Assembly (NCBI GenBank): GCA_004764695.1
Contig: SMSO01000005.1
Span: forward strand, 992,001-1,056,000
Origin: Schizochytrium sp. TIO01
Lineage: Eukaryota > Protista > Bigyra: Labyrinthulomycetes
Direction of reading: 5' to 3'
DNA length: 64,000 bases
A program made the translations under genes and the position numbers. Shown one piece after another: positions 754-40,278 of this stretch. The notes below the pieces were generated by a model, which was not told the origin of the DNA, did no database searches, and worked only from the letters and a program-made list of their open reading frames with translations. The number at the start of each line of letters is the position of its first letter. Positions within the stretch are counted from its first letter, which is position 1.

Positions 754-1262
754 TCCTATTCCACTGCTCTTATTTCAGTCGAAGATAGCAAAAGACTTCT
801 GGATCTGGAACCTGAGCGTATATAATGAGTATTCGCCTCATCTCACGAGTCAAATTTTCCCGTTTGGTTTTTAAAGTTCATCAAATTCCAAATTTAAAGA
901 TATAGCATAGCATACACAGATTAATTTTTATTCTTCTTCGTCAGTTGTATTGAAAGGAAAGGCCATATGAAAAGAGGTGAAACAAAAACTATCTATGGTT
1001 GAATTTTCTGAAAAAATAATTCCATCAAACGTTATTCGCTGCCTGCAGGTTTTGCCATAGATACTTCGAATTACATAAGCTTAACAAAGCAAAGGACAAC
1101 CTCGCAGCAAAAATAAAAGCTCAGAGACTTTGTTCTGCACTTGTATTAGCAAACAGCGAATCGCCGAAGACTCAATTTTATGCTTGTAAAGAACCAGCAG
1201 CTCAATTTTGAATTTATGTTAGTAGCATATAGTAGGAAATAACGAAATAGCTAAGCAGGAAT

Positions 1263-1318
1263 TTTGTTTGTTTGTTTGTTTGTTTGTTTGTTTGTTTGTT
1301 TGTTTGTTTGTTTGTTTG
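1263..1318. repeat. (TTTG)n microsatellite
   Basis: Direct reading of about 14 units. Confidence 0.97.
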
Positions 1319-1536
1319 GGCTTTATCTAAAAGTGTTACTTATATATATATATTTTTTATAAAAAAGGAAACTAAAATTACGTGGTGTTGTAATTTATTG
1401 CTGAATAATAGCTTTGTAAACGTTTTATTTTTTGAAGACTCAGCAATGAAGCGCTTAGGAGACACACCTAAGATGCGCACAACAGACGTTAAGAAAGTAC
1501 AGGCCAGTCATGCATTATGCTATTTCAGATTTACAA

Positions 1537-2529
1537 TTATACAATAAAAGGAATGAATGCCTTTCGATGGGCAGGGTAATCCTCGAACTTTGCTTTGTAC
1601 CATGAGTGGGAACGCACAGCTGTGAGGCCAAGGTTTAAACCAGTGAACATTACTGCAAGCCATAGCGACACGTTGTGGACATCCATTAGAGCTAAGCCTA
1701 AATAAATCAGGACTTCAGTGAAGTAATGAGGACATGATACATATTCAAAAAGACGCCCTTTCGGCATAAAGTATTGCCTTTTCTGGTGAACCATTGAGGT
1801 CACATCTGAGTTCCGAAGTCCAGCAAGAATTCGATGACACCGGTGTTGTTCATAGGAAGCAACGATAAAAACGATAATGCCCAGTAAGCCTATAACATCG
1901 ATGTTCTCTCCGAGTTCTATGTACATTGGGTTGTTGAATTTATAGAGTGAAGAGTCGAACACTGTGCTCCATCCATAGGCGAGGTAGAACGTAAGACCAA
2001 TAAAATACCCAAAGACATGCATACGAGCTTCTGAGCTGGAAACAAACATGTTGTTCTCTTCATACAAACGTCGTCTTGCTTGCAGAACTAAGAGAAGCAA
2101 TATTGTAGAAGGACGCTGCCAGCCAGTTTCTCGCAAGATCGAGCCTTGTCCTGACTTACACAATACTATACCAAAACAGGATGCTAAAATTCCTTTGTCA
2201 GACACGACTGACTCCATCCACTGAAGAATCACTCCATCCCAGCCCGCGTAAGTTGCAATCATGAGCAACAAAGCCCATCGCCAACACACCTCGTAGAAGT
2301 GAGCAAACCACCGCTTTGGAACTGTCCAATTTCGAATAATATTCCCAATCGATTTGACATCATCTAATTTGGTCTCTTGAGAATTTACAAGACCTCGTAG
2401 CTTCCCATAGCGACTCCAATCTGCAGCTTCCTTCCAAATCACAGCGGCGGCTGTGGATGTTAAGGCAATGGCCCAGTACGCGCGAGCAAGCCTAGCTGCG
2501 AGTTGAGCACACTCAATGAGGATCAGCAT
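1537..2529 (-). CDS. Polyprenol reductase / steroid 5-alpha-reductase family (SRD5A3/DFG10-like)
   Basis: Multi-TM protein with VPKRWFAHFY, RRLYE, QHRCHRILA.LR, P.GRLFEYVSCPHYFTEVLIY and HSWYKAKFEDYP..RKAFIPF. Confidence 0.9.
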   Translation of the reverse strand: MLILIECAQLAARLARAYWAIALTSTAAAVIWKEAADWSRYGKLRGLVNSQETKLDDVKSIGNIIRNWTVPKRWFAHFYEVCWRWALLLMIATYAGWDGVILQWMESVVSDKGILASCFGIVLCKSGQGSILRETGWQRPSTILLLLVLQARRRLYEENNMFVSSSEARMHVFGYFIGLTFYLAYGWSTVFDSSLYKFNNPMYIELGENIDVIGLLGIIVFIVASYEQHRCHRILAGLRNSDVTSMVHQKRQYFMPKGRLFEYVSCPHYFTEVLIYLGLALMDVHNVSLWLAVMFTGLNLGLTAVRSHSWYKAKFEDYPAHRKAFIPFIV

Positions 2530-3208
2530 TTTGTTGATCCAGCTTTACAAAACGAACTTCTAGATTTTTGCTCTAAAATTAACAGGTAAGAAGTTCTGGG
2601 AACCTCGAGTTATTTTGTACGTACTATCTGCTAAACCTCTTTGACCAAAACGAAAGATGTTGGTACTGCACAAAGCAACTAAGCCAATTGACTACTTTCC
2701 ACTGAGCAAGGGCCAACCTGGTTATATCTCCTTTCAATGTTCTAAATCAATCAGAGGGAGGGTTCTTTTCTGTTGCGTTCTCTATGAGATGAGTTTTGAC
2801 AAACCAGGATGAATAGGGAAAGCAATATGTGTGAAACTTATCACCTGAAGACAGCAATCTCCAAGAATCTACACAAGTGGACCAAACCACCACAACCACC
2901 AGCCGACCAAGCACCCTCCCAAGCACACGGCAATCCTCTCAAGGCATTCAAGCGTTGCTGCGGTATGAAAAATAGCTAGGGTAAAGCGCAGCCAAGAGAG
3001 GAACCGCAAACTCTGCTGGTTGGGTGCAACGACCTTTCATGTTTGTTGCCACTTTTGGACTCGTCTGTATTATCAGGTAGTACTTTAAAAAGAAATGAAA
3101 TTGTTTTGGTTTTCAGGAAGTGTCTCCTTGTATTAATATACTTAGCATGAAGTAGCAGTGTTTTTGATAAATGTTTATCCCTCATTACCAACTATTCCGA
3201 GTCTAATT

Positions 3209-3547
<339 letters not shown>

Positions 3548-4805
3548 CAATTGGTTTGCTTTTGTAGTTTAAGGACATTCATGAGTGAGATTCGCACCTG
3601 CTAATTGAAGTTTCACTCCACTAATTAGCAGTGGAAAATTTTACATAAGCTTGGAAAAGACAAGATGGCCCAGGTAAAGATCTAATTTGAGCTACAGGTG
3701 CGAAAACGACGCCTTTACTTTCTTCAAAGGTAATCATATTCTCTATTCGAATGACTGGCTTGCAAAACTTGTTCGCGATAAGATACGGATTAAAGCCTAT
3801 GTCATGGACATACATGAAGAAGCCTATGTATATTCTTCGTCATTGTCAGACTTGTCAGTAGTTTCTTGGTTAGCATTTGACTACGATCGTCAGAATCAGA
3901 ATCTTCATCTCACGTCTTCATTCACTACAATATCAACCTAGCTGTAGCCCAGAAGTTCTGAATCGATTTGAATTTAGTGACCCGGGGTATGAATGTTATC
4001 GTCTACTAAATTTGTGTACAATGTGGTCATAGCTATGGCATGTCATCTTCCTAGAGTATTCAAAAGCTCCCGAACAATTGGAGAAAGTTCAGAAATAGTA
4101 TTATTCTATTTCAATCGTTTTTAATAATTGCCGGGGCTTTCAAAAGGATCAAAAATTAACCTTTATAAATCAAGAGTTACAATATATAGACTGGGCTTTC
4201 ATAATTTGTAAATTAGCGCAGCGATTTTTCAAATCCGAAAATTACTGTTGAAAGACAATAGTAGCAGGGCTACATGTAGAATTGCAGAATGCCATGAAGA
4301 CCCCGAGGTTTATAGCAGAAGCGTTTGATGCAATTCGGTCACCGCCTGCATTTCTTGTATAAAAAAATATATCACATGGGCATGAAACCCGTAAAAAAAA
4401 ATGGTAAATCAATCAAAGGTATGTACATAAATTATTCCAGCATTAAAATAATTTCACAATTTAGCCGAGCAACCCGCCAAGTCTCCAGTAGTAGTACCTA
4501 ATGTAAACTCGATTAAAGTATTTTTTCATACAGAATATAAATTAATGTATGCCTATATGACCTATACAAAGCTGATCAAATAGAAAGGAATGCTACGGTA
4601 GAAATAGGAAGAACAACGATTATAGTATTTAATCAGAGTCTAATCAATAAATCCATACTGCGGAGGCTCCGCCTACGCTTCGGCGTTGGCCAGTGCTTTC
4701 GTTGTGCCCACCACCTCCCTGGGCTCATTGTCGCTTGCACTTTCTCAAAAGCTTTTGAGCGCTGCCATATTGTCTGTGCTTAGTGTCTGCCTTGTACATC
4801 GCACC

Positions 4806-7433
4806 ATGAGCAGCGGTCGCAGCGCCCAGCGGGAGTCTGCGCGCTCCGAGGTAGATTGGGATCCTCTCTCCGGCCTCGGTAGCGAGCCAGGCCTTGACGA
4901 GGGAGAGGAATTTAATCCCTTTAATAGCCCGCCACCCTCAGCCTCCGAGGTTCCTATGCTTCTCGAGAATGACAATATTGTAGATCCTGACAATAATAAC
5001 GCCAATTTGCAGAAATCCTTGCTTTCAAACGGGAGCTCCACGAATCCGACTTTGGGAGCCCCGTCGTATTCTGTGACGGCTCCAATTGGCAGCATACCTG
5101 TGACATCTCTAGCTGCTATGAACCATGCTCAACAGCAGCTTCCACAGCATATCTCACAGCAGCAAAGATTCGCCTCGCGTGAGGCAAGAACTTCAGGAGT
5201 TTCTGGAGATATGCACTTCATGAAGCCGGTACAACGAAGGGTTGCGGAGCCACAGCGTCAAAATCGTAAGGCTACTGAAGGCCGAGGGCGTGGAGCTCAG
5301 GGTCATGATCCGTTGCAAGCTCAGACGATACCGCCGACGGTAAGCAATATTGTTGAACATGGAAGTCAGGGAAATATGATGACGGCGCCAACAATTGCAA
5401 ACGTTGGAGAACTGGGGGCTGCCACAAATGAAAATCTTTCAGTAGAGGAGGAGGCCGAGCTATCACATAAACCAGTTGGGGCAGAAAAGACTTTGGTTAA
5501 TATCGACCGGGTTGCTTTCGTCTCTATGAACCAGGACATTGTGCACGGAAAACTTCACGTTACAAACTATCGCGTGTACTTTAACCCATCTTCACAAAGC
5601 AAAAATGAAAGCCATAATTGGCTCTTTCAGGACGATAGCATGTTCGATGTTCCCCTTGGTTGTATCGATAAGATATCACGAGGTGCAAGTGCACAAAGCG
5701 TTAGTAGTAGAGGAAAGGACGGCCTCATGCTGAACTTGGTTTGTAAAGATTTCCGCAAGCTACAATTTAGATTCGCATCGCATGCTGATGCAAGTAAAGT
5801 ACATGACCTCGTGCGTATGTCTGCTTTTCCTGTTAGCGAAGGACAAGGTCTGCGTTGGTTGTTCGCATTAGAACACGGCCGGTTCGTGCTTGGCAAAGGT
5901 AGCGAGCAGCGCGGATGGCGGTTGTATGATCCTAGAAGGGAATTCATTAGGCAAGGACTCTTCGGGGCGAGTGGAAACGACGAAAATATATGGCGTCTCA
6001 GTGAGGTTAATCAAAGGTACCAACTTTGTGCAAGCTACCCTTCACTGCTTGGAATTCCTTCTTCAATCAGCGACGAAGATTTGCGCGTTGTCGCTCAATT
6101 TCGCAGCAAAGGTAGAATTCCTGCATTATCATGGTATAATGCGGATAACAAAGGCTCTATTTGGAGAAGCAGTCAACCTAAGGTGGGCCTTGGCAATAAC
6201 ACATGTCGAGCAGATGAACAGCTCTGGTCCAGTATCCTTCAACGTGCTAATAGCGTTGCTGCCCGCATTGTAGACTGTAGACCTTACAAGAATGCTCTTG
6301 GCAATAAAGCTAAAGGTATGGGTTATGAGGACGAGCTACGTTACCCGCATACCTCAGTATCATTTCAGAACATTCAGAACATTCACACGATTCGTGGATC
6401 TATGGATAAGCTAATGCATCTTGTGACCAGCACTTCTGCGTCAAGCTCTAGTAGCTCGAGCGTCTCGAGCCCCGGACACAACTGGTTAGCTAATGTAGAG
6501 AACACCGGTTGGCTTAATCACTTACGTGCTGTACTGAATGCTAGTATAACTGTTGCTCGCTATGTAGCTTGCAACGGATTCCCTGTTCTTGTTCATTGTT
6601 CAGATGGCTGGGACAGGACCTCGCAAGTTTGTGCTCTCGCTCAACTCTTGTTAGATCCATATTACCGAACACTAGAGGGCTTCCCGGTTCTGGTGGAAAA
6701 GGAGTGGCTTTCCTTTGGATACCGCTTTATGTCACGCACAGGGCATGGAATGGAGGGTGGGTCCGAGGAGCGCTCGCCGTGTTTCCTACAATTTATTGAC
6801 TGCGTATGGCAACTCCTGAACCAATATGCACCATGCTTTGAGTTTAACGAGGCATATCTTATATGCATTTTGAAACATTTATACTCTTGTAAGTATGGTA
6901 CGTTTTTATGCGATAATGAGTCTGAAAGGATGCGTGAGGCCATTCCTCTGAAGACGGTATCTCTTTGGGATCACCTGGCCGAACGGAAAAACGATTTTGT
7001 GAACATTTTGTATTCACCAATGCCAAATGAGCTAGAGGAAAAGATACCATTGCTTCCTCACCCAGCTGTGGTGGCCAGAAAAGTTGTGCTCTGGGATGAT
7101 TATTATCTCCGTTACGCAAGTTTGCCCTCGCTTCATGATCATGCTTTCCAGTATCTGGCGAGGGCAAAGTTCAGGCGCGAGATCCAAAGTACAGCGCAAA
7201 AACTCGAAGCATCGCTCCGGGAAGCGTACAAGGAAAAGGAAAGATTGCAAAAACAGATTGTAGCCTTACGTACGTCAATTACGGAGTTTTCAGTGGGCGA
7301 CAAAGACGAGATTAAAAAGTCGACGAGCGAGGTTGGTGACCCCCCCAAGTCCTCTGCGGAAGATACTGCCTCTGACGATGGTTCTGCTGTCTCTGTTGAT
7401 GTCGATGACATCCCGAGCGGCGATGAGCTCTGA
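4806..7433 (+). CDS. Myotubularin-family phosphoinositide 3-phosphatase (PH-GRAM, catalytic domain, C-terminal coiled coil)
   Basis: Catalytic VHCSDGWDRT, FRSKGRIPAL, LVEKEWLSFG and GRAM-like GKLHVTNYRVYF. First ATG is at 4806; the track start at 4686 is TTG. Confidence 0.95.
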   Translation: MSSGRSAQRESARSEVDWDPLSGLGSEPGLDEGEEFNPFNSPPPSASEVPMLLENDNIVDPDNNNANLQKSLLSNGSSTNPTLGAPSYSVTAPIGSIPVTSLAAMNHAQQQLPQHISQQQRFASREARTSGVSGDMHFMKPVQRRVAEPQRQNRKATEGRGRGAQGHDPLQAQTIPPTVSNIVEHGSQGNMMTAPTIANVGELGAATNENLSVEEEAELSHKPVGAEKTLVNIDRVAFVSMNQDIVHGKLHVTNYRVYFNPSSQSKNESHNWLFQDDSMFDVPLGCIDKISRGASAQSVSSRGKDGLMLNLVCKDFRKLQFRFASHADASKVHDLVRMSAFPVSEGQGLRWLFALEHGRFVLGKGSEQRGWRLYDPRREFIRQGLFGASGNDENIWRLSEVNQRYQLCASYPSLLGIPSSISDEDLRVVAQFRSKGRIPALSWYNADNKGSIWRSSQPKVGLGNNTCRADEQLWSSILQRANSVAARIVDCRPYKNALGNKAKGMGYEDELRYPHTSVSFQNIQNIHTIRGSMDKLMHLVTSTSASSSSSSSVSSPGHNWLANVENTGWLNHLRAVLNASITVARYVACNGFPVLVHCSDGWDRTSQVCALAQLLLDPYYRTLEGFPVLVEKEWLSFGYRFMSRTGHGMEGGSEERSPCFLQFIDCVWQLLNQYAPCFEFNEAYLICILKHLYSCKYGTFLCDNESERMREAIPLKTVSLWDHLAERKNDFVNILYSPMPNELEEKIPLLPHPAVVARKVVLWDDYYLRYASLPSLHDHAFQYLARAKFRREIQSTAQKLEASLREAYKEKERLQKQIVALRTSITEFSVGDKDEIKKSTSEVGDPPKSSAEDTASDDGSAVSVDVDDIPSGDEL

Positions 7434-9278: not shown

Positions 9279-9691
9279 TTTTCCAATAGGATCCTCTTGG
9301 TTTGTAAGAGCTATAGCTCAGTCTTCAACAAAACTCAGTTCCTGAACGGGACAGTAGTTCTATACAATACGTCTCCCCAAACTCTTTCACCCGTGGTGCG
9401 TGAAAGTAGATACCTAGAAGAACTGGCACTCAAGAGCAGGTAACGATTGTCCTCAATAGTTTCCCTATCTCTGTCTCTGAGCTTGCTAGTCAAAGATAGT
9501 GAAATTGTTGAATAGATCACTACTAAGCTGGCAAGAAACCAATCAAAGTCGCGCTCCTGCTGGAGTGCTCACGAATTGTAATCAGAACTCAAACGAGGAT
9601 CGTAGCCGCCGCGATCTTTTAACTGCTTGAACTCAACAGACTTGTATTAGGATTGTATAGTGAACTCACTATGTGGCAGTACCTGCTAATA

Positions 9692-9831
9692 GGTTATTTG
9701 GGAGATTTGTACTCTTAGATTTTAAACTACAAAATTTGCAAAACTTGCATTTCATAGAAGGAGCTAAGACTCCATCACGAGCTAGTTAGACTAACCCGCG
9801 ACTCAATGAAATGATTTTTTTTTAAAATCAT
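9692..9831 (-). ncRNA. Predicted omegaRNA (scaffold ~9712-9831 plus ~20-nt guide 9711-9692)
   Basis: On the - strand, stem CAUUUCAU/AUGAAAUG encloses an 11-bp G-U-containing hairpin and the hairpin GGAG-UCUUAG-CUCC, whose loop is complementary to CUAAGA at 9718-9713. The position over the 3' end of the nuclease is typical of TnpB/Fanzor. Confidence 0.65.
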
Positions 9832-11691
9832 GTCCTTGGATAGGTAGCGTAAAAGGATGCCTCTGGCGGCATGGACATCACGGTCTGCTACATGGTTGCA
9901 CTTGGGATTAGGGCATTGGAAAACCTTGGATGCGCCGAGTTTATGGTGGAGGGTACCGCACTCATTGCATGTTTTTGAAGTGTAGCTCTCTTGGCAAAGA
10001 ACAAGCTTGCACCACGGGAACATCTCAGCCTTGTGAACGAGAGCCTGACGGAACCCAAAATGGCACCAACGACACATCATTCGAACAGACTTCTTGGATA
10101 TCCGTCGCTCCATCTTCCTACTCATCTTAGAGGTTTCGAATTTAGGCAAGAGAATAACACGATAGTTTTCACAAAGCCAAAGTGCGAGCTTGCGATGAAT
10201 CTCAGTGGTCTTGTTCTTGATCTTGAGTTGGGCGCGATAGAATGCGCGCTTCAAGGGGGTGTTGAAATTGTCTTTATCACTGGATGCAGTTTTCTTATTA
10301 TTTTCTTGAGCTTTATCAATCCTGCTCTGGATCTTATCAACGCGGCGACAGAGATAGAATATGGTTCTAAAATCTTTCCCTGTGCCCCATTCAATGGCGC
10401 GGCCATCAGCGTCATACATCGTCTGAAACGAGCGAACACCTGGATCTAGAGCAATGACACCATGGTGCGCCTTGGGTGCCTGGTCCATTGGACGCTTTTT
10501 TTCTTCTCGTAAGAAGCAGAAGTAGACATGCCCAAGGCGATTCATTTGCACACGCATGGCGTTCGAAATCTGGTCGGGGAGCTTTTCTTTACGTGTTCGG
10601 ATTTTTTTTAGAAAGCCGGAGGTCTTTGATTTCTTCAAATTCCAGGTACGTGCATTCACTTCGAAAATCTGTGATTCATCACGCTTGGTCCGAAACTTAT
10701 AAAAAGATTGCTCATGAACTTTCTTTTGTACAGCGAGTTCTTCGTTTTTGGCTCGTCCCGAGTTAATAGCCTTGAAGAAATCCAGAATCCCGGAATCACG
10801 GATAGCCTGTGGGACCTCGAGAACCCATTCAGGAGCACCATTCCTTTCTTTAGATCGAACGGCTTTCTTTTCTCCATAGAGGGCCCCATGTGTTTTTGGA
10901 TTCCCATCTTCATCTACTAAAACCTGCTTCGTCTTGGAATCCTTTTTGATGCACGCTTCTTGATGCAATTTGATGGCTTCTTCCTCGCCCTTCGCCACGT
11001 CTCGATGAAACGCAACGCCAGTATTGCAGGCTCTTCTAGTGACACCAAACCATTTAAGCAATTGTGTACACTGATCTTTAGTAGGGTATACCCTAACCTT
11101 TCTGGCACGGACAAGGTCATATTCTTTCTTGGTGGTCTTGCGCGCCTTCGTGCGAGTTCGCTTCTTCCTTGCTGCGTCGTCGCCGTCTATTTTGCGCTGC
11201 TCGTTTTCCGTGATGCGATGCCACAAAGACGGTGATAATTCCGAGGAGGTCTTTGGTGAAGGTGTCTGAGTCTCCGGCATGTGCATCTTGGCCGTGTACC
11301 ACGAGTTTGACATTTTTTCTTTCGAAAAGGTGTTCCAGGAGGTCGACTGCGATTCGCGCAAGTCGGTCGCGGTGCATGACCACAACTTGGCCGATTCCTC
11401 CGCGGTCGCAGGCGTCCAGTAGGGAGCACAGGCCTTGGCGTTTGAAATTGACCCCACTACCGATGTCTTTGTAGACGGCGGAAGCATCTGGGTAGGCGCG
11501 CTGGAGATCGCCAATCTGGCGTTCGAGGTCCTCCTTTTGCTTGGCCGAGGACACTCTGGCGTAGATAACGGTACATCCAGAGTTGCGTTGCTCGCGGCCG
11601 GTGGAACCGAGATCAAAGATGCGCTCAACATCGTCGCTGGCGTAGATGCGCTTTCCTCCGGGGAAGCGCGCGCAGCGCACGCATCCGCCAT
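9775..11691 (-). CDS. Fanzor2 / IS607 TnpB-like RNA-guided endonuclease
   Basis: HTH-like KVRVYPTKDQ..L..WFG..R; RuvC-I IALDPG (D 10444-10446); canonical Glu site is Pro (ILLPKF) with alternative Glu in QESYTSKTC (9988-9990); Zn finger CNEC..CPNPKC; RuvC-III DRDVHAARGIL. First ATG 11691 gives 638 aa; the frame is open to GTG 11775. Confidence 0.93.
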   Translation of the reverse strand: MADACAARASPEESASTPATMLSASLISVPPAASNATLDVPLSTPECPRPSKRRTSNARLAISSAPTQMLPPSTKTSVVGSISNAKACAPYWTPATAEESAKLWSCTATDLRESQSTSWNTFSKEKMSNSWYTAKMHMPETQTPSPKTSSELSPSLWHRITENEQRKIDGDDAARKKRTRTKARKTTKKEYDLVRARKVRVYPTKDQCTQLLKWFGVTRRACNTGVAFHRDVAKGEEEAIKLHQEACIKKDSKTKQVLVDEDGNPKTHGALYGEKKAVRSKERNGAPEWVLEVPQAIRDSGILDFFKAINSGRAKNEELAVQKKVHEQSFYKFRTKRDESQIFEVNARTWNLKKSKTSGFLKKIRTRKEKLPDQISNAMRVQMNRLGHVYFCFLREEKKRPMDQAPKAHHGVIALDPGVRSFQTMYDADGRAIEWGTGKDFRTIFYLCRRVDKIQSRIDKAQENNKKTASSDKDNFNTPLKRAFYRAQLKIKNKTTEIHRKLALWLCENYRVILLPKFETSKMSRKMERRISKKSVRMMCRWCHFGFRQALVHKAEMFPWCKLVLCQESYTSKTCNECGTLHHKLGASKVFQCPNPKCNHVADRDVHAARGILLRYLSKDMILKKNHFIESRVSLTSS

Positions 11692-11815
11692 CGGCCCAGC
11701 CCCGAAGGGCGCTTGCTGAGACCCCAAACTTCCGGTGAAAGAACTTTGCTGGTTTGTATTCGAGGTTTGCTCCACTTGCAGTGTTTGGAGCTTGACGGTT
11801 CCTCGGCCTCCCCAT
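11117..11815 (-). CDS. tnpA: IS607-family transposase TnpA (N-terminal HTH + serine recombinase)
   Basis: MerR-like HTH (GVSASALRGWADGG..R.PGGKRIY), then IYARVSSAKQKEDLERQ (catalytic Ser), DIGSGVNFKRQGL, RDRLAR and DLLGIITVF...HGKR. Confidence 0.95.
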   Translation of the reverse strand: MGRPRNRQAPNTASGANLEYKPAKFFHRKFGVSASALRGWADGGCVRCARFPGGKRIYASDDVERIFDLGSTGREQRNSGCTVIYARVSSAKQKEDLERQIGDLQRAYPDASAVYKDIGSGVNFKRQGLCSLLDACDRGGIGQVVVMHRDRLARIAVDLLEHLFERKNVKLVVHGQDAHAGDSDTFTKDLLGIITVFVASHHGKRAAQNRRRRRSKEEANSHEGAQDHQERI

Positions 11816-13946
11816 TTTCTTACCTAACCTCCACTTCTTATCAATAACCTAAATAAACATAATATATGATTAATATGAAATATAAGTTATCGAACTTTTA
11901 ACGGTTTTTGTTTTTGTTTTTTGTTTTTCCCTTATATGATCAATACTGATAGGGTCAGGTAATAATATTTCAATATGTTTAACAAAGGGGTGTTAGTTCA
12001 TTTGACAACTTCATTTTGTTTACAAAGTAAATCCCAACACAGCGCTCACTTAGATTTTGTCGATATGCAAACAATCTCCATACACAAAGGGGACGCCTTT
12101 CCAGTGTTAAACGTATGTAAATATCTGCGCCTAGCATCTGTATAAGTTGTTTCCTCAAAATATCCTGCCTTTTGCATTCTAATAAGCTATTCGCCCTCTT
12201 GAAGTGTATGTGAACATAAGTCTTATACCTAGGTGATCAAAAGGGGATTGTATATGAATCATATAATTTTCTTTATATCATTTTCGCTGTGTTGGGTTAT
12301 ATTCATTGCAAGATGCCTTGTATAAGTTTGAAATAATGTTGATGATCACACTTCCTCATAAAAGAATCCACGCCAGATCAGTGATATTTTCCTGGCTTCG
12401 GAAATATATCAACACGTCGCACAGGCCACGAGCCAATAGCAAGCACTTGAATCAAGCTTACGAAAATTTCCAGGCTCCAATGTTTAATCAAATATCCATC
12501 TGATTTGTGGCTTCAACTTTTGTTTGTAGCTGCAAACCCGCGTTTGAGATTGCTGTGTCCATACTCATACTGACGATGCGTTGCTGCCTTCACCCTCTGC
12601 ATGGAGTATCACTGCAACAAATCTCCATGTTTCGCTAATTGTTGGTGACTGTTTCACTCTATTGCAAAGCCATCAATGAACACAACTTTATACAAACGTC
12701 AAGTAAACAAATCAAAATATCAAGATCTCAGACACAGCTGTTTCGCAGCCATCCTCTAGTTTCCAAAGACTTTAATGTGCAAGCCTGAATTTTTATATCT
12801 CTGGTCAAGGGATTTATAGTCAGCCTTTATTCTGAGTTGGAAATCTATGGATTGAGAAGATCTTATCCACTCGACGAAATTCGCAGTAATTAGTTTTGCC
12901 TCTTTCTTCACTGCCACACAAAAGGCTTCCTGTATTTTTAGCATAGCCGAACATATTCGACAACTATGCTTGCTTGCTCGGACCGTCTGTGCGATTGCCT
13001 AGGTTCACAGAATTCGTGTTTGCCGTATTAGATTTAAGTAATTCTATACCTTTTTTAAAGTTTACACCTTAGTTCGATCCTTGCACCCCCTGATTTATGA
13101 ATCTAAAAGCCTAGAAATGCAATAGAATTCCCAGCGAAATATTCGTTCCACCTGGGTAGCTAGCAACACTGGGATATGAGAGTGCTATCATTGAACGCTG
13201 TAGATCTTGAAACCGAGCCTTTGATAAATAGGCTCAATTAAAGTCCTACTTGTTATAATTCTATAATATTCTCTGTTGCAGTTCAGTGCTGATTTGCTTT
13301 GTTTAGCGGATTCTGGGTATTATTCTCATTTTGAGACAAAAAACTGATAATGATTATAATTCTAAAATTACCCCACCCTTTTCAAATGCAATTAGTACAA
13401 GCAGGTAGTCTTGTAAAAGTCACCCGCATGATGACAAGAGGTTGTTTCCAAAATATTTCGCAAAAGCACAAACAGTGAATAGTTTTGTGCATTAAAAACA
13501 GTGCATTGCATGGACTCAGATTTAACTTATCAAGAACAAATCTTGACAAGAAAAGCTAAGCGCTATTCGACCTTGCGAGAATAGGTCGCCATAAGAATAA
13601 AATATGTGTATACCAGGTATACAACCTCATATCTGGCAAACATGACAAATTAAAACATTTGATGCTGATTATCTCGAATCTAATACCATCAAAACATGAT
13701 ATATTCTTTTAGACTTTTTGAGATTATGCTAAATATTTCCTTCTTCGAGTGAAAAGTTGATTAACCCTCGACCCAAATCACATTTGAACAATCTACGAGT
13801 TCAGAGGTACCATAGCTTATCATTTTCTTTTTCCTGTTAAAAATAAAGGGAATAACACTAGGCCCAGACACTTGCGTCTCAATTATGCATAACTCATGTA
13901 TTAAACTAAACTTCGTTTGAATTAAAAAAAGTATCGTAAGAATCAA

Positions 13947-38157: not shown

Positions 38158-40278
38158 ATGGGAGGATATCTTGTAGCAGACAAAGCTGATTTCGAGGAGA
38201 AGACCGATTGTGCGCGACGCAAAATGTCGGGAGATGGGGAGGATATGGCTCCCGTGCGGCGCATTGCTCGCACGGAGCATTTGAATGCGTTTCTAACATC
38301 ATCTTCGTACGACCGTCTGGTGAACTTTCTGCTGGAGATGAATCATGCGGCCCTCGGTGGCAAACCCTCGAGTCCGAGCAATTTTGAAGGTGCCAGCGAA
38401 GCGGTTCTCGCAATGATCGAGATTCTCGAGAAAGCTGAACAGCTTTTGGAGGAATTCCCCCCAATGCAACAGAACGCACGTTTCGGAAATGCTTCATTTC
38501 GAGATTATATGGAGGCTATTCGGGAACGCAGCGAAGAAGATATGGCCTCGCTCAGTCAAGAACACGCCAAAGAGCTCGCAGGATATTGGTGTGCGAGCTT
38601 CGGCAATAGCCGCCGCCTAGACTTTGGTACAGGCCACGAGGCAAGCTTCCTCGTATGGATGTTCGCATGTCGTGAGCTTGAAATTACCGATGACCTGGAA
38701 GGTCTGGTGCTCCACGTGTTCCCTAGATATCTCGAACTGGTGTACTCTGTACAATCTCTCTACAGGCTGGAGCCGGCTGGGTCACACGGGGTCTGGTCTC
38801 TTGATGATTATCACATCCTTCCATTCGTTTTTGGATCTGCTCAACTTTGTTCTGCAGAAGACGGATCTCAAGGAAGTTTACTAGGCACTCGGCCCAAAAC
38901 TGTACGCGATCGAATGATGGTTGACGATCTGTCTCCGGTTAGTATGTACATGAGAGCGATCAAACGCATCAACGAGCTCAAGTCCGGCCCTTTCGAGGAG
39001 CATTCGCCGCTCTTGAACGATCTTGCGAATATTCCCTCCTGGAAAAAGGTCAACAGTGGTTTATTGGAAATGTTTAAAGGGGAGGTTCTTGGCAAATTTC
39101 CAGTCGCACAGCATTTTCTTTTCGGACCTACTTTCCCATGCACATGGGAAGTTAGCTCAGGCGACATCTCTATTCTAGAGAGCGATCAATCTGTAAGTAG
39201 CTCTCATGCAGGGAGCAGTAGTGGAGCTGGGGCGCCTTCTTCAGGTTCTGGCATCCCGAGCCCATTCGATGTGGCTCGACTTCGAACTCCAGCTGACGGA
39301 GATGCTCTGACGAAATATTTTGGAATTTCTCGACGGCCTACACACGGTGCTATTCGACCAGGCGGTTCTGGTGCATCCATGCCGCAGGGCGAAACCTGCA
39401 TGATGCCGAAGGATCTGAAAATTGCCGAGGAAACTGCAGCAGTGCCGCATACTTTACTTGACGGCGATCGCGGGGTTGAGGTGAAGGGGTTTCGCATCGA
39501 AACAAACAAGGGTCGTATATCTGGCGAAGCAGAGCTGGAAAATGTGAGAGACCAGCATACGTTTGAGGGTCACTGCTTGGATTTCCCTCTCCCTGAGATG
39601 CTTTTTGGGTTTAATAAAGTACAATTTACGCATCTTGACAGCGGAATAACACTTGATTTCAATGCTTCTGATGCTTTGTGCGGCTGTAAGATCGTACGCA
39701 ATGAGGAAGGTGAACCCGATCGCACGGTGTTCAAGCTGCCGAACTCTGCCCATTGGGAGAACAGGCAGACCTTGAACGGTGAAACCATTAAGTCGTGGCG
39801 AGATGATTTTGACTGGACTTTCTCTACACGCTATAGGGGTTCTTTGTCTCGTGATGGAGAGCCGATTCCAATGCCCACTGAGGTTTGTGATGAAAAAATC
39901 GACTACCAGCTTCTGCGCAAGCGCGAGCCATTTCTGTATTTTGACACTGTTCCTCTTTATGAAGATGATCTTTTCGACAATGGCGAAAGCAAGCTTACCG
40001 TACGCTTGCGTGTAATGACGTCATGCTTCTTTGCACTCTCTCGCCTTTGGCTTCGTGTTGATAACACCTTTGTGCGCTGCTTTGATACGCGTGTTTTCCA
40101 CAAATTTGACACCGACTATATTTTGGTGGAGCACACTCGTAAAGAAATGAGTGCCAAGGAGCTCCAGGATAAGGGCTTTGGTGATATGCGCATCATGATG
40201 AACGAGGAGCGGGTTGAAAAACTCTTGAAGGAAATTTCTTGCGAAACGGTGAAGATCCCTCTTACGTCTTCATCTTAG
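38158..40278 (+). CDS. PTPA (PP2A phosphatase activator, Rrd1/2) fused to TIP41/TIPRL domain
   Basis: PTPA: RFGNASFR, FGNSRRLDFGTGHE, LEPAGSHGVWSLDDY, GPFEEHSPLL, EVLGKFPVAQHFLFG. TIP41: LPEMLFG.N, FNASDAL, FDWTFST.Y.G, LYEDDLFDNG, RVM..CFF.L.R..LRVD. Single uninterrupted ORF. Confidence 0.93.
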   Translation: MGGYLVADKADFEEKTDCARRKMSGDGEDMAPVRRIARTEHLNAFLTSSSYDRLVNFLLEMNHAALGGKPSSPSNFEGASEAVLAMIEILEKAEQLLEEFPPMQQNARFGNASFRDYMEAIRERSEEDMASLSQEHAKELAGYWCASFGNSRRLDFGTGHEASFLVWMFACRELEITDDLEGLVLHVFPRYLELVYSVQSLYRLEPAGSHGVWSLDDYHILPFVFGSAQLCSAEDGSQGSLLGTRPKTVRDRMMVDDLSPVSMYMRAIKRINELKSGPFEEHSPLLNDLANIPSWKKVNSGLLEMFKGEVLGKFPVAQHFLFGPTFPCTWEVSSGDISILESDQSVSSSHAGSSSGAGAPSSGSGIPSPFDVARLRTPADGDALTKYFGISRRPTHGAIRPGGSGASMPQGETCMMPKDLKIAEETAAVPHTLLDGDRGVEVKGFRIETNKGRISGEAELENVRDQHTFEGHCLDFPLPEMLFGFNKVQFTHLDSGITLDFNASDALCGCKIVRNEEGEPDRTVFKLPNSAHWENRQTLNGETIKSWRDDFDWTFSTRYRGSLSRDGEPIPMPTEVCDEKIDYQLLRKREPFLYFDTVPLYEDDLFDNGESKLTVRLRVMTSCFFALSRLWLRVDNTFVRCFDTRVFHKFDTDYILVEHTRKEMSAKELQDKGFGDMRIMMNEERVEKLLKEISCETVKIPLTSSS

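Follow-up and report, generated by a model that had tools for sequence, protein, structure and literature searches.

A probably young, multi-copy IS607-type element with a Fanzor2 nuclease in a thraustochytrid genome, and the overlap of its two genes

A 64,000-nucleotide stretch of the Schizochytrium sp. TIO01 assembly (SMSO01000005.1:992,001-1,056,000, forward strand; here called the window and numbered 1-64,000) holds on its minus strand an IS607-type element that encodes the serine recombinase TnpA and a nuclease assigned to the Fanzor2 family. We consider it probable, at roughly 85%, that this is a full-length copy with intact open reading frames (ORFs) of a young, recently amplified multi-copy IS607 element in the nuclear genome of a thraustochytrid. 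An earlier interpretation made from the letters alone (the sequence-only reading) had proposed a recent and possibly autonomous element and had suggested looking for further copies, and both points were borne out in the genome's own 64-Mb, 37-contig assembly. Sixty-two matches were found there, at least 20 and by our count about 21 of them near-full copies with 90-99% identity, distributed over at least 10 contigs. A sister copy (L002) is 98.5% identical to the window copy, and in another subfamily the copies are 99-100% identical to each other, which points to a very recent burst. Both ORFs are open in at least nine copies, and five more have a broken tnpA and an open nuclease frame; the nuclease frame of 661-662 codons is kept in 12 of the 15 full-length copies. 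Copies with the same ends lie at different sites, a sign of mobility. Older, decayed families with 66-85% identity are also present in the assembly.

The ends of the element were mapped by aligning 18 copies with their flanks, which placed the whole element at 9712-~11945 (-). The right end is exact at 9712, where all 18 copies stop at ...AAAATCTAAGAG| (one with AGGAG). On the left side, homology between copies reaches 11911, and in 13 of the 17 other copies a CAG and two to six variable nucleotides precede ACAAAAACCG. In the window copy the junction reads CAG (11948-11946), then TAT, followed by an A-rich expansion of ~31 nucleotides (11912-11942). From the shared CAG junction, the first base of the element is likely 11945. 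The sequence-only reading, which had given the span as 9712-11850, was exact on the right and too short on the left. Neither inverted repeats nor a target-site duplication were found in the 18 aligned copies, as expected for a serine-recombinase element. The nucleotides between the flanking CAG and ACAAAAACCG vary by subfamily (TATG, TCTA, GTATA, TACA, TAAGAT, and others in L002-L020), and these variable bases, like the 31-nucleotide expansion (11912-11945), are unexplained for a precise serine-recombinase crossover.

The left flank ends in CAG in 14 of the 18 copies and the element itself ends in ...GAG. The CAG at 11946-11948 (-) is a candidate target or crossover site and a candidate target-adjacent motif (TAM). 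These roles are suggested by analogy, because the IS607 family uses a GG dinucleotide (PMC6188088) and the TAM of the viral Fanzor2 protein ApmFz2 matches the start of its element (PMC10530073). An AG in the flank together with AG as the last two element bases would fit a two-base crossover comparable to the GG of IS607 (PMC6188088). Between the left end and tnpA lies a non-coding region (11816-11945, -) with repeated TTCGAT motifs; the repeats are possible TnpA binding sites, and the region is a possible promoter.

The genomic surroundings are those of a protist chromosome. The flanking genes encode a myotubularin, an S10 carboxypeptidase, a DNA polymerase delta (Pol delta), a PTPA-TIP41 protein and a cGMP-type kinase, and the long ORFs around the element have few or no introns and look like ordinary eukaryotic genes. 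Pol delta shares 80% identity with its counterpart in the thraustochytrid Hondaea fermentalgiana, which among named organisms is the host's nearest relative. The description of the neighbourhood as ordinary nuclear genes with no viral or bacterial neighbours is upheld by these five genes, and the Fanzor2 gene is located in the nuclear genome. Contamination by bacterial or viral DNA, or a chimeric assembly, is extremely improbable; the sequence-only reading had listed a contaminant or chimera among the outcomes that would undo it. The family does have bacterial relatives, mostly cyanobacterial. However, the copies are spread over many contigs of the assembly, the flanking genes are eukaryotic, and the element sequence is present in sequencing runs from 12 studies. 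In an independent DNA run both flanks had a depth of ~108, the single-copy level, compared with 1,200-6,300 inside the element, and one contig of run X1 (9300-9738) bridges the right junction.

The first ORF, tnpA (11117-11815, -), is intact and encodes an IS607-family serine recombinase of 232 residues. The NCBIfam model NF033518 (IS607 family transposase) matched it from position 4 to the last position, 187, and scored 143 bits, above its cutoff of 110; Pfam Resolvase matched residues 83-217 with an E-value of 2.5e-20. The layout is an N-terminal helix-turn-helix (HTH) followed by a C-terminal serine-recombinase catalytic domain, where the MerR-type HTH is a weak match (residues 28-66, E 0.0016, 19 bits) below the Pfam cutoff of 21.6. 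The catalytic serine is Ser89 in YARVSS (11549-11551, -). The undisrupted IS607 TnpA with its motifs was thus described correctly from the letters.

The second ORF is open from 11775 to 9775 (-) and encodes the nuclease. It matched Pfam Cas12f1-like_TNB (1e-12) and HTH_OrfB_IS605; the score against NCBIfam guided_TnpB, 83.5 bits, was under the cutoff of 100. Fanzors and "pro-Fanzors" are defined by a DPG motif and an alternative glutamate (Yoon et al., PMC10711439). The RuvC-I aspartate is D396 of the DPG in ALDPGVRSF (10444-10446, -), and D396, P397, and G398 are invariant among 63 sequences. At the canonical RuvC-II position the protein has LLPKF and no glutamate; the alternative glutamate, E548 in QESYTSKTC (9988-9990, -), lies six residues ahead of the first CxxC, in the stretch QESYTSKTCNEC. 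A zinc ribbon (CNEC...CPNPKC; 9898-9969, -), recognized in the sequence and by the Pfam TNB model, and the RuvC-III aspartate D585 in ADRD (9877-9879, -) complete the set, spaced as CNEC-x14-CPNPKC-x4-DRD. The triad, zinc finger, and displaced glutamate noted in the sequence-only reading were all confirmed, LLPKF included.

Profile, structure, and tree comparisons were used to place the nuclease. A profile built from 63 homologues found the mimivirus "TnpB-like protein L79" (ApmFz2, 9B0L) with 4e-49 and ISDra2 TnpB with 1e-19 (hmmsearch). The AlphaFold model of the window protein (predicted local distance difference test, pLDDT, 80; predicted template modelling score, pTM, 0.76) had its best match in 9B0L, with a Foldseek E-value of 3.8e-19 and a VIA Z of 21.6 over 430 aligned residues (model 68-604). 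The VIA Z for ISDra2 TnpB was 19.4, and the Fanzor1 SpuFz was far worse (Foldseek 1.9e-5, template modelling score 0.32). In a quick maximum-likelihood tree, which was rooted at the midpoint, with the careful search unfinished, and held no Fanzor1 or ApmFz2 rows, the window protein joined eukaryote-like proteins, metagenome contigs, and one viral contig in a group with strong support, apart from 25 bacterial, mostly cyanobacterial rows. The profile search and the quick tree, checks of the kind that the sequence-only reading had asked for, are in agreement with its assignment, with ApmFz2 as the best profile match and a eukaryote- and virus-like clade. The conclusion that the nuclease is the Fanzor2 of an IS607-type system is supported; the family is already known and this is a further member. 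Two records named for the dinoflagellate Durusdinium trenchii (P0017, P0130) hold a Fanzor2 45% identical and, on a 5.4-kb contig, a Pol delta 67% identical to the window proteins. They may represent labyrinthulomycete-like contamination of that dinoflagellate's assembly or a real occurrence.

The nuclease ORF is longer than the sequence-only reading had assumed. Its start lies far upstream of the point that a protein of ~500 residues would imply, and the overlap with nearly all of tnpA had been missed. The long form (9775-11691, -; stop codon 9777-9775) comprises 638 codons if it begins with the ATG at 11691 and 618 if with the one at 11631, as judged from the ORF, homologues, and transcripts. 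Homologues with 37-47% identity have 600-700 residues and align to the window's +1-frame translation across tnpA, sharing the N-terminal motifs CxPFW..T..S..LWSCT.TD, NSWF, and ITENEQRK. Two MMETSP transcripts contain ORFs of 617 and 601 residues that are 93-94% identical to that of the window and begin at the equivalents of the ATGs at 11691 and 11631, respectively; both carry a variant that places a stop in tnpA. Because of these transcript ORFs, the Fanzor2 family can be said to be transcribed in a related strain.

In the AlphaFold model, residues 1-65 are unconserved and predicted to be disordered. Residues ~68-170 (11122-11430, -) form a small predicted domain that aligns with 9B0L from chain residue 53 onward, and all TnpB structures align only from model residue ~171. 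In structure this region corresponds to the N-terminal domain (NTD) of ApmFz2, which is missing from TnpB structures (Schargel et al., PMC11832414). The ApmFz2 NTD has two parts: "RuvC-R", through which the RuvC fold is completed and the omegaRNA contacted, and a basic "thumb" that lies on the target DNA beside the TAM (PMC11832414). Five NTD residues (W72, S80, L83, S110, and W111) do not vary in any of the groups compared, from the window protein and metagenome loci to viral and bacterial sequences. Between NTD and core, the eukaryote-like sequences contain a K/R-rich insert that is absent from the cyanobacterial relatives. In the window protein this stretch, RKKRTRTKARKTTKK (11125-11169, -; defined by alignment), resembles a nuclear localization signal (NLS) and is likely a nuclear-import signal, by analogy with the N-terminal NLSs validated in Fanzors (Jiang et al., PMC10530073). 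Two sequences binned as bacterial, one in a Bacteroidetes metagenome-assembled genome (MAG; L111, on a 1,994-bp contig) and one in a Dehalococcoidia MAG (L112), group with the eukaryote-like clade and possess the K/R-rich insert, and probably represent eukaryotic or viral DNA that was mis-binned.

Two genes share the DNA at 11117-11691 (-): frame 0 belongs to tnpA, and frame +1 encodes the N-terminus of Fanzor2. The first ~170-190 Fanzor2 codons overlap tnpA, and the overlap takes up 575 of the 699 nucleotides of that gene. A metagenome scan of 80 loci, using tblastn for TnpA and Fanzor, yielded 15 loci with overlapping TnpA (37-53% identity) and Fanzor (29-39%), the latter always in the +1 frame of TnpA. 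The Fanzor frame runs through 620-916 codons without a stop in these 15 loci and in the window, 16 of 16, and tnpA is broken in four of them. For the 11 loci with intact tnpA, synonymous codons were resampled with the TnpA protein kept. Identity between loci in the +1 frame was 0.313 compared with 0.201 ± 0.005 after resampling, and four stops were observed in +1 versus 72 ± 6.5 resampled; the observed +2 frame had 67. TnpA third positions are 0.41-0.53 identical under the conserved Fanzor NTD and 33-39% identical in the HTH part, and those of the single-coding Fanzor core are 0.33 identical.

The same arrangement was found in bacteria and in virus-like DNA. A bacterial scan with one genome per species gave 80 loci, mostly from Microcoleus, Oscillatoria, Moorena, and other cyanobacteria (the "pro-Fanzor" group). 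In 69 of the 70 loci with a TnpA on the same strand, the nuclease is in the +1 frame. Stops in the 8,925 bacterial codons numbered 17 for the frame of TnpA and 14 for +1, compared with 541 for +2; 65 loci are free of stops in +1 and none in +2. A 129-kb viral contig from IMG/VR has the same +1 arrangement at 30% identity. These counts exclude chance as the source of the +1 overlap. On sequence comparison, the overlap is conserved from bacterial (mostly cyanobacterial) relatives to eukaryote-like and virus-like contigs and appears to predate the eukaryotic elements. Whether the Fanzor2 NTD is therefore no eukaryotic addition but an ancient overprinted segment, kept in +1 across nearly all of tnpA from cyanobacteria to protist and virus-like elements, is in our judgement evenly balanced. 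The viral contig bears on a further proposal of the sequence-only reading, delivery by a giant virus, which received no specific support: as the lone viral example, at 30% identity, it demonstrates the architecture in virus-like DNA and identifies no donor.

A shorter nuclease, starting at an internal ATG at 11313 or 11286 (~505 residues), with the open +1 frame an untranslated by-product of the constraint on tnpA, is very unlikely. It agrees with the Pfam and NCBIfam models, whose matches begin no earlier than residue ~223 in the frame of 666 codons, and with RefSeq, where the cyanobacterial homologues are annotated short. However, the resampling that keeps TnpA predicts 72 stops and 20% identity in +1, compared with the four stops and 31% observed, and in the bacterial loci the +2 frame has 541 stops versus 14 in +1. 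The +1 frame also stays open where tnpA is broken, and in the model the region superimposes on the NTD of the solved ApmFz2 structure. On two plasmids, of Trichormus and Nostoc PCC 7120 (L191:1501-3282, L192:1501-3282), the RefSeq TnpB coding sequence starts ~190 codons inside the conserved frame, so that the long form is hidden in public annotation. In the gap so left, no tnpA is listed in the PLSDB gene table, which is incomplete; the original record may annotate one.

Slightly less probable still is programmed ribosomal frameshifting that would join the two frames into a TnpA-Fanzor fusion. The constant +1 offset in about 85 loci would agree with it, as would a genomic copy (L002) in which the frames are fused by a 1-nucleotide deletion. 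Against this, the transcript ORFs start with their own methionine, an in-frame ATG lies near the start of the +1 frame in most loci, and the first ~65 residues are unconserved and predicted to be disordered; no slippery site was seen, though none was sought. Separate starts for TnpA and a long Fanzor2 remain the preferred reading. In five near-identical metagenome loci (L046-L050), the TnpA fragment and the Fanzor match (from residue ~193) lie apart and neither NTD nor overlap was detected. The tree places them on a long branch within the eukaryote-like clade, and the arrangement could be due to secondary loss or decay. A grouping of L046-L050, L052, and L058 as a clade lacking the NTD was considered and rejected: L058 is cut by a contig end, and the others lie inside the eukaryote-like clade on long branches.

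The literature searched, an incomplete selection, mentions the overlap of IS607 orfs only in passing ("two orfs which often overlap"; PMC6188088) and contains no paper that links the Fanzor2 NTD to it. If the NTD is overprinted on tnpA, nuclease and transposase are tied to the same nucleotides, which would explain why tnpA sequence is kept in copies whose tnpA is dead. The conserved overlap would mean that the Fanzor2 NTD, with RuvC-R and thumb, arose in bacteria and passed to eukaryotes later. It would also be a rare example of overprinting in a mobile element, and one that is deeply conserved. Annotation and family models would understate the length of the true Fanzor2 protein by ~120-190 residues, which matters for expressing these enzymes.

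Several points weigh against the reading of the window copy as an intact member of a young, mobile family; they concern its own sequence, selection, movement, expression, and the candidate omegaRNA. The sequence-only reading had called the system intact, which stands for the open frames and complete motifs and does not extend to activity. A private cysteine codon (Y202C, 11026-11028, -) alters the RRAYN motif, where tyrosine is found in 97% of homologues and in 10 of 10 other genomic copies examined. The family stop after ...SKDMI has been lost through an indel in a T/A run, which leaves a 16-codon C-terminal extension found in the window copy only (9778-9825, -). The second knuckle of the zinc ribbon is Cx4C and not CxxC, so that the published regular expression would miss it. 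The ratio of non-synonymous to synonymous differences (pN/pS) among paralogues is ~0.9 (0.6-1.4) in the Fanzor core, meaning that recent purifying selection on the nuclease is not visible; for tnpA it is 0.1-0.25 over the HTH and 0.2-0.5 where the two genes overlap. No excision joint or empty site was seen in the assembled contigs of public sequencing runs. Activity of the window copy is, on the sequence, unproven, and there is no direct sign that any copy moves now.

The window copy, and perhaps the nuclease of the whole family, could instead be a decaying relic, whose ORFs are open merely through the youth of the copies and whose Fanzor2 is inactive in the host. In addition to the private changes and the missing excision joint, the Fanzor-core pN/pS of ~0.9 holds between subfamilies, the shared changes number 60 non-synonymous to 21 synonymous, where the neutral site ratio is 3.3:1, and several copies have stops in tnpA or a 293-bp insert. 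On the other side, the frame of 661-662 codons persists in most full-length copies, the subfamily with 99-100% identity indicates a very recent burst, and the transcripts encode the full long ORF. Among positions that are at least 90% conserved in 61 distant homologues, 73 of 77 are kept family-wide. One stop-creating variant was found compared with about five expected under neutrality, a marginal estimate that takes ~4% of substitutions to make stops. Taken together, a relic is somewhat unlikely, and a young, recently amplified element is preferred.

Expression was assessed from Logan contigs only, which carry neither strand nor transcript ends and are fragmented inside the repeat. The RNA nature of the runs is guessed and summed contig depth is a poor measure; with these limits, the three RNA-like runs had a depth of 0 over the intergenic flank (11900-12400) and of ~40 over the gene next to it (to the extent covered by flank contigs, in two of the three), compared with a summed depth of 10^4-10^5 inside the element in two of the three. 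This pattern fits strong transcription. In the two runs that have depth farther upstream, it falls 260-900-fold just upstream of ~11795, that is, downstream of the tnpA ATG, which hints at Fanzor-only transcripts. Transcript starts and translation of either frame are unproven. At least five copies (L015:~1504-3994, L016, L019, L021, L026) share a 293-bp insertion with (CCTAA)5 at the equivalent of window position 11733/11734. It splits tnpA after about codon 27 and leaves the long Fanzor frame open, and its junction is also present in the RNA-like runs X1, X5, and X9.

A candidate omegaRNA scaffold with four conserved hairpins ends at the right end of the element (9712-9829, -). In a hand-set four-hairpin structure of the last ~118 nucleotides, 88% of cells were paired in 14 young and old copies, versus 36-46% when the pairing partners were slid. 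Other results speak against it. Covariation in the 14 copies was not above that of shuffles, and RNAalifold on the same copies gave only three short helices. The search of the region against Rfam returned no relevant match. A covariance model found only copies from the same genome and a weak match (E 0.11) at the end of the L041 Fanzor ORF, and did not reach distant loci. An omegaRNA at the 3' end of the element is plausible. If it reads through, the flank past the right end (9692-9711, -) is a candidate guide, by analogy with TnpB and Fanzor (PMC10530073, PMC13565253).

A mechanism can be proposed from these features. TnpA would excise the element as a circle and place it into (C)AG sites, the AG dinucleotide being the point of crossover. 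About 120 nucleotides at the 3' end would be transcribed as omegaRNA with the flank past 9712 as the guide, and Fanzor2 would enter the nucleus by means of its K/R-rich stretch. There it may cut the empty donor site, with a TAM near CAG, and repair would copy the element back. TnpA and Fanzor2 would be made from different start codons, through different transcripts or leaky scanning. RNA-guided, TAM-dependent cleavage by the window Fanzor2 is assumed from its characterized relatives. Three of 18 young copies (L002:483-1146, L006:3734-5019, L007:817-1393) are located inside the left end of an old, diverged member of their superfamily or within ~350 nucleotides of it, and in L006 the young copy seemingly splits the old left end. 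Such nesting is far commoner than expected by chance and may reflect attraction of TnpA to element ends.

The closest known system is ApmFz2 (L79; 9B0L), the best match in sequence and fold. It shares the DPG, alternative glutamate, zinc ribbon, and compact TnpB-like core, an NTD ahead of that core, an N-terminal basic NLS-like stretch, and an IS607 TnpA partner (PMC10530073). It is only ~20% identical, resides in a virus with three copies compared with about 20 in a protist chromosome here, and has GGG as flank motif in place of CAG; the window Fanzor2 is known from sequence alone. The cyanobacterial "pro-Fanzor" IS607 TnpB proteins (PMC10711439) likewise have the DPG and alternative glutamate, an IS607 TnpA, the NTD motif, and the +1 overlap. 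They are 27-33% identical, prokaryotic, lack the K/R-rich insert, and form a separate clade on the tree. With IS607 of Helicobacter pylori and its family (PMC6188088), the element shares a serine recombinase with N-terminal HTH, the lack of inverted repeats and target duplication, possibly the same dinucleotide at ends and target, and overlapping orfs. It differs in the apparent AG instead of GG and in the extent of the overlap, 575 of 699 nucleotides, which encodes a folded domain. ISDra2 TnpB (8H1J, 8EXA) aligns over the WED-REC-RuvC-zinc-finger core (Z 19, from model residue ~171), whereas it has the canonical RuvC-II glutamate, no NTD, and an IS200/IS605 Y1 transposase as partner. The Fanzor1 SpuFz (8GKH), also a eukaryotic RNA-guided nuclease with rearranged glutamate, is larger, with other insertions and other transposon partners, and its fold match is much weaker.

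Fanzor2 proteins, as compact eukaryotic RNA-guided nucleases, attract interest for genome editing, and their natural role in the host is almost wholly unknown. With about twenty young copies that are transcribed, a culturable thraustochytrid would be a natural test system for Fanzor homing or retention.

Among the neighbouring genes, the PTPA-TIP41 ORF (38158-40278, +; 706 residues) contains complete PTPA (6e-95) and complete TIP41 (9e-48) domains. PTPA and TIP41, which both regulate protein phosphatase 2A, usually occur as separate proteins.

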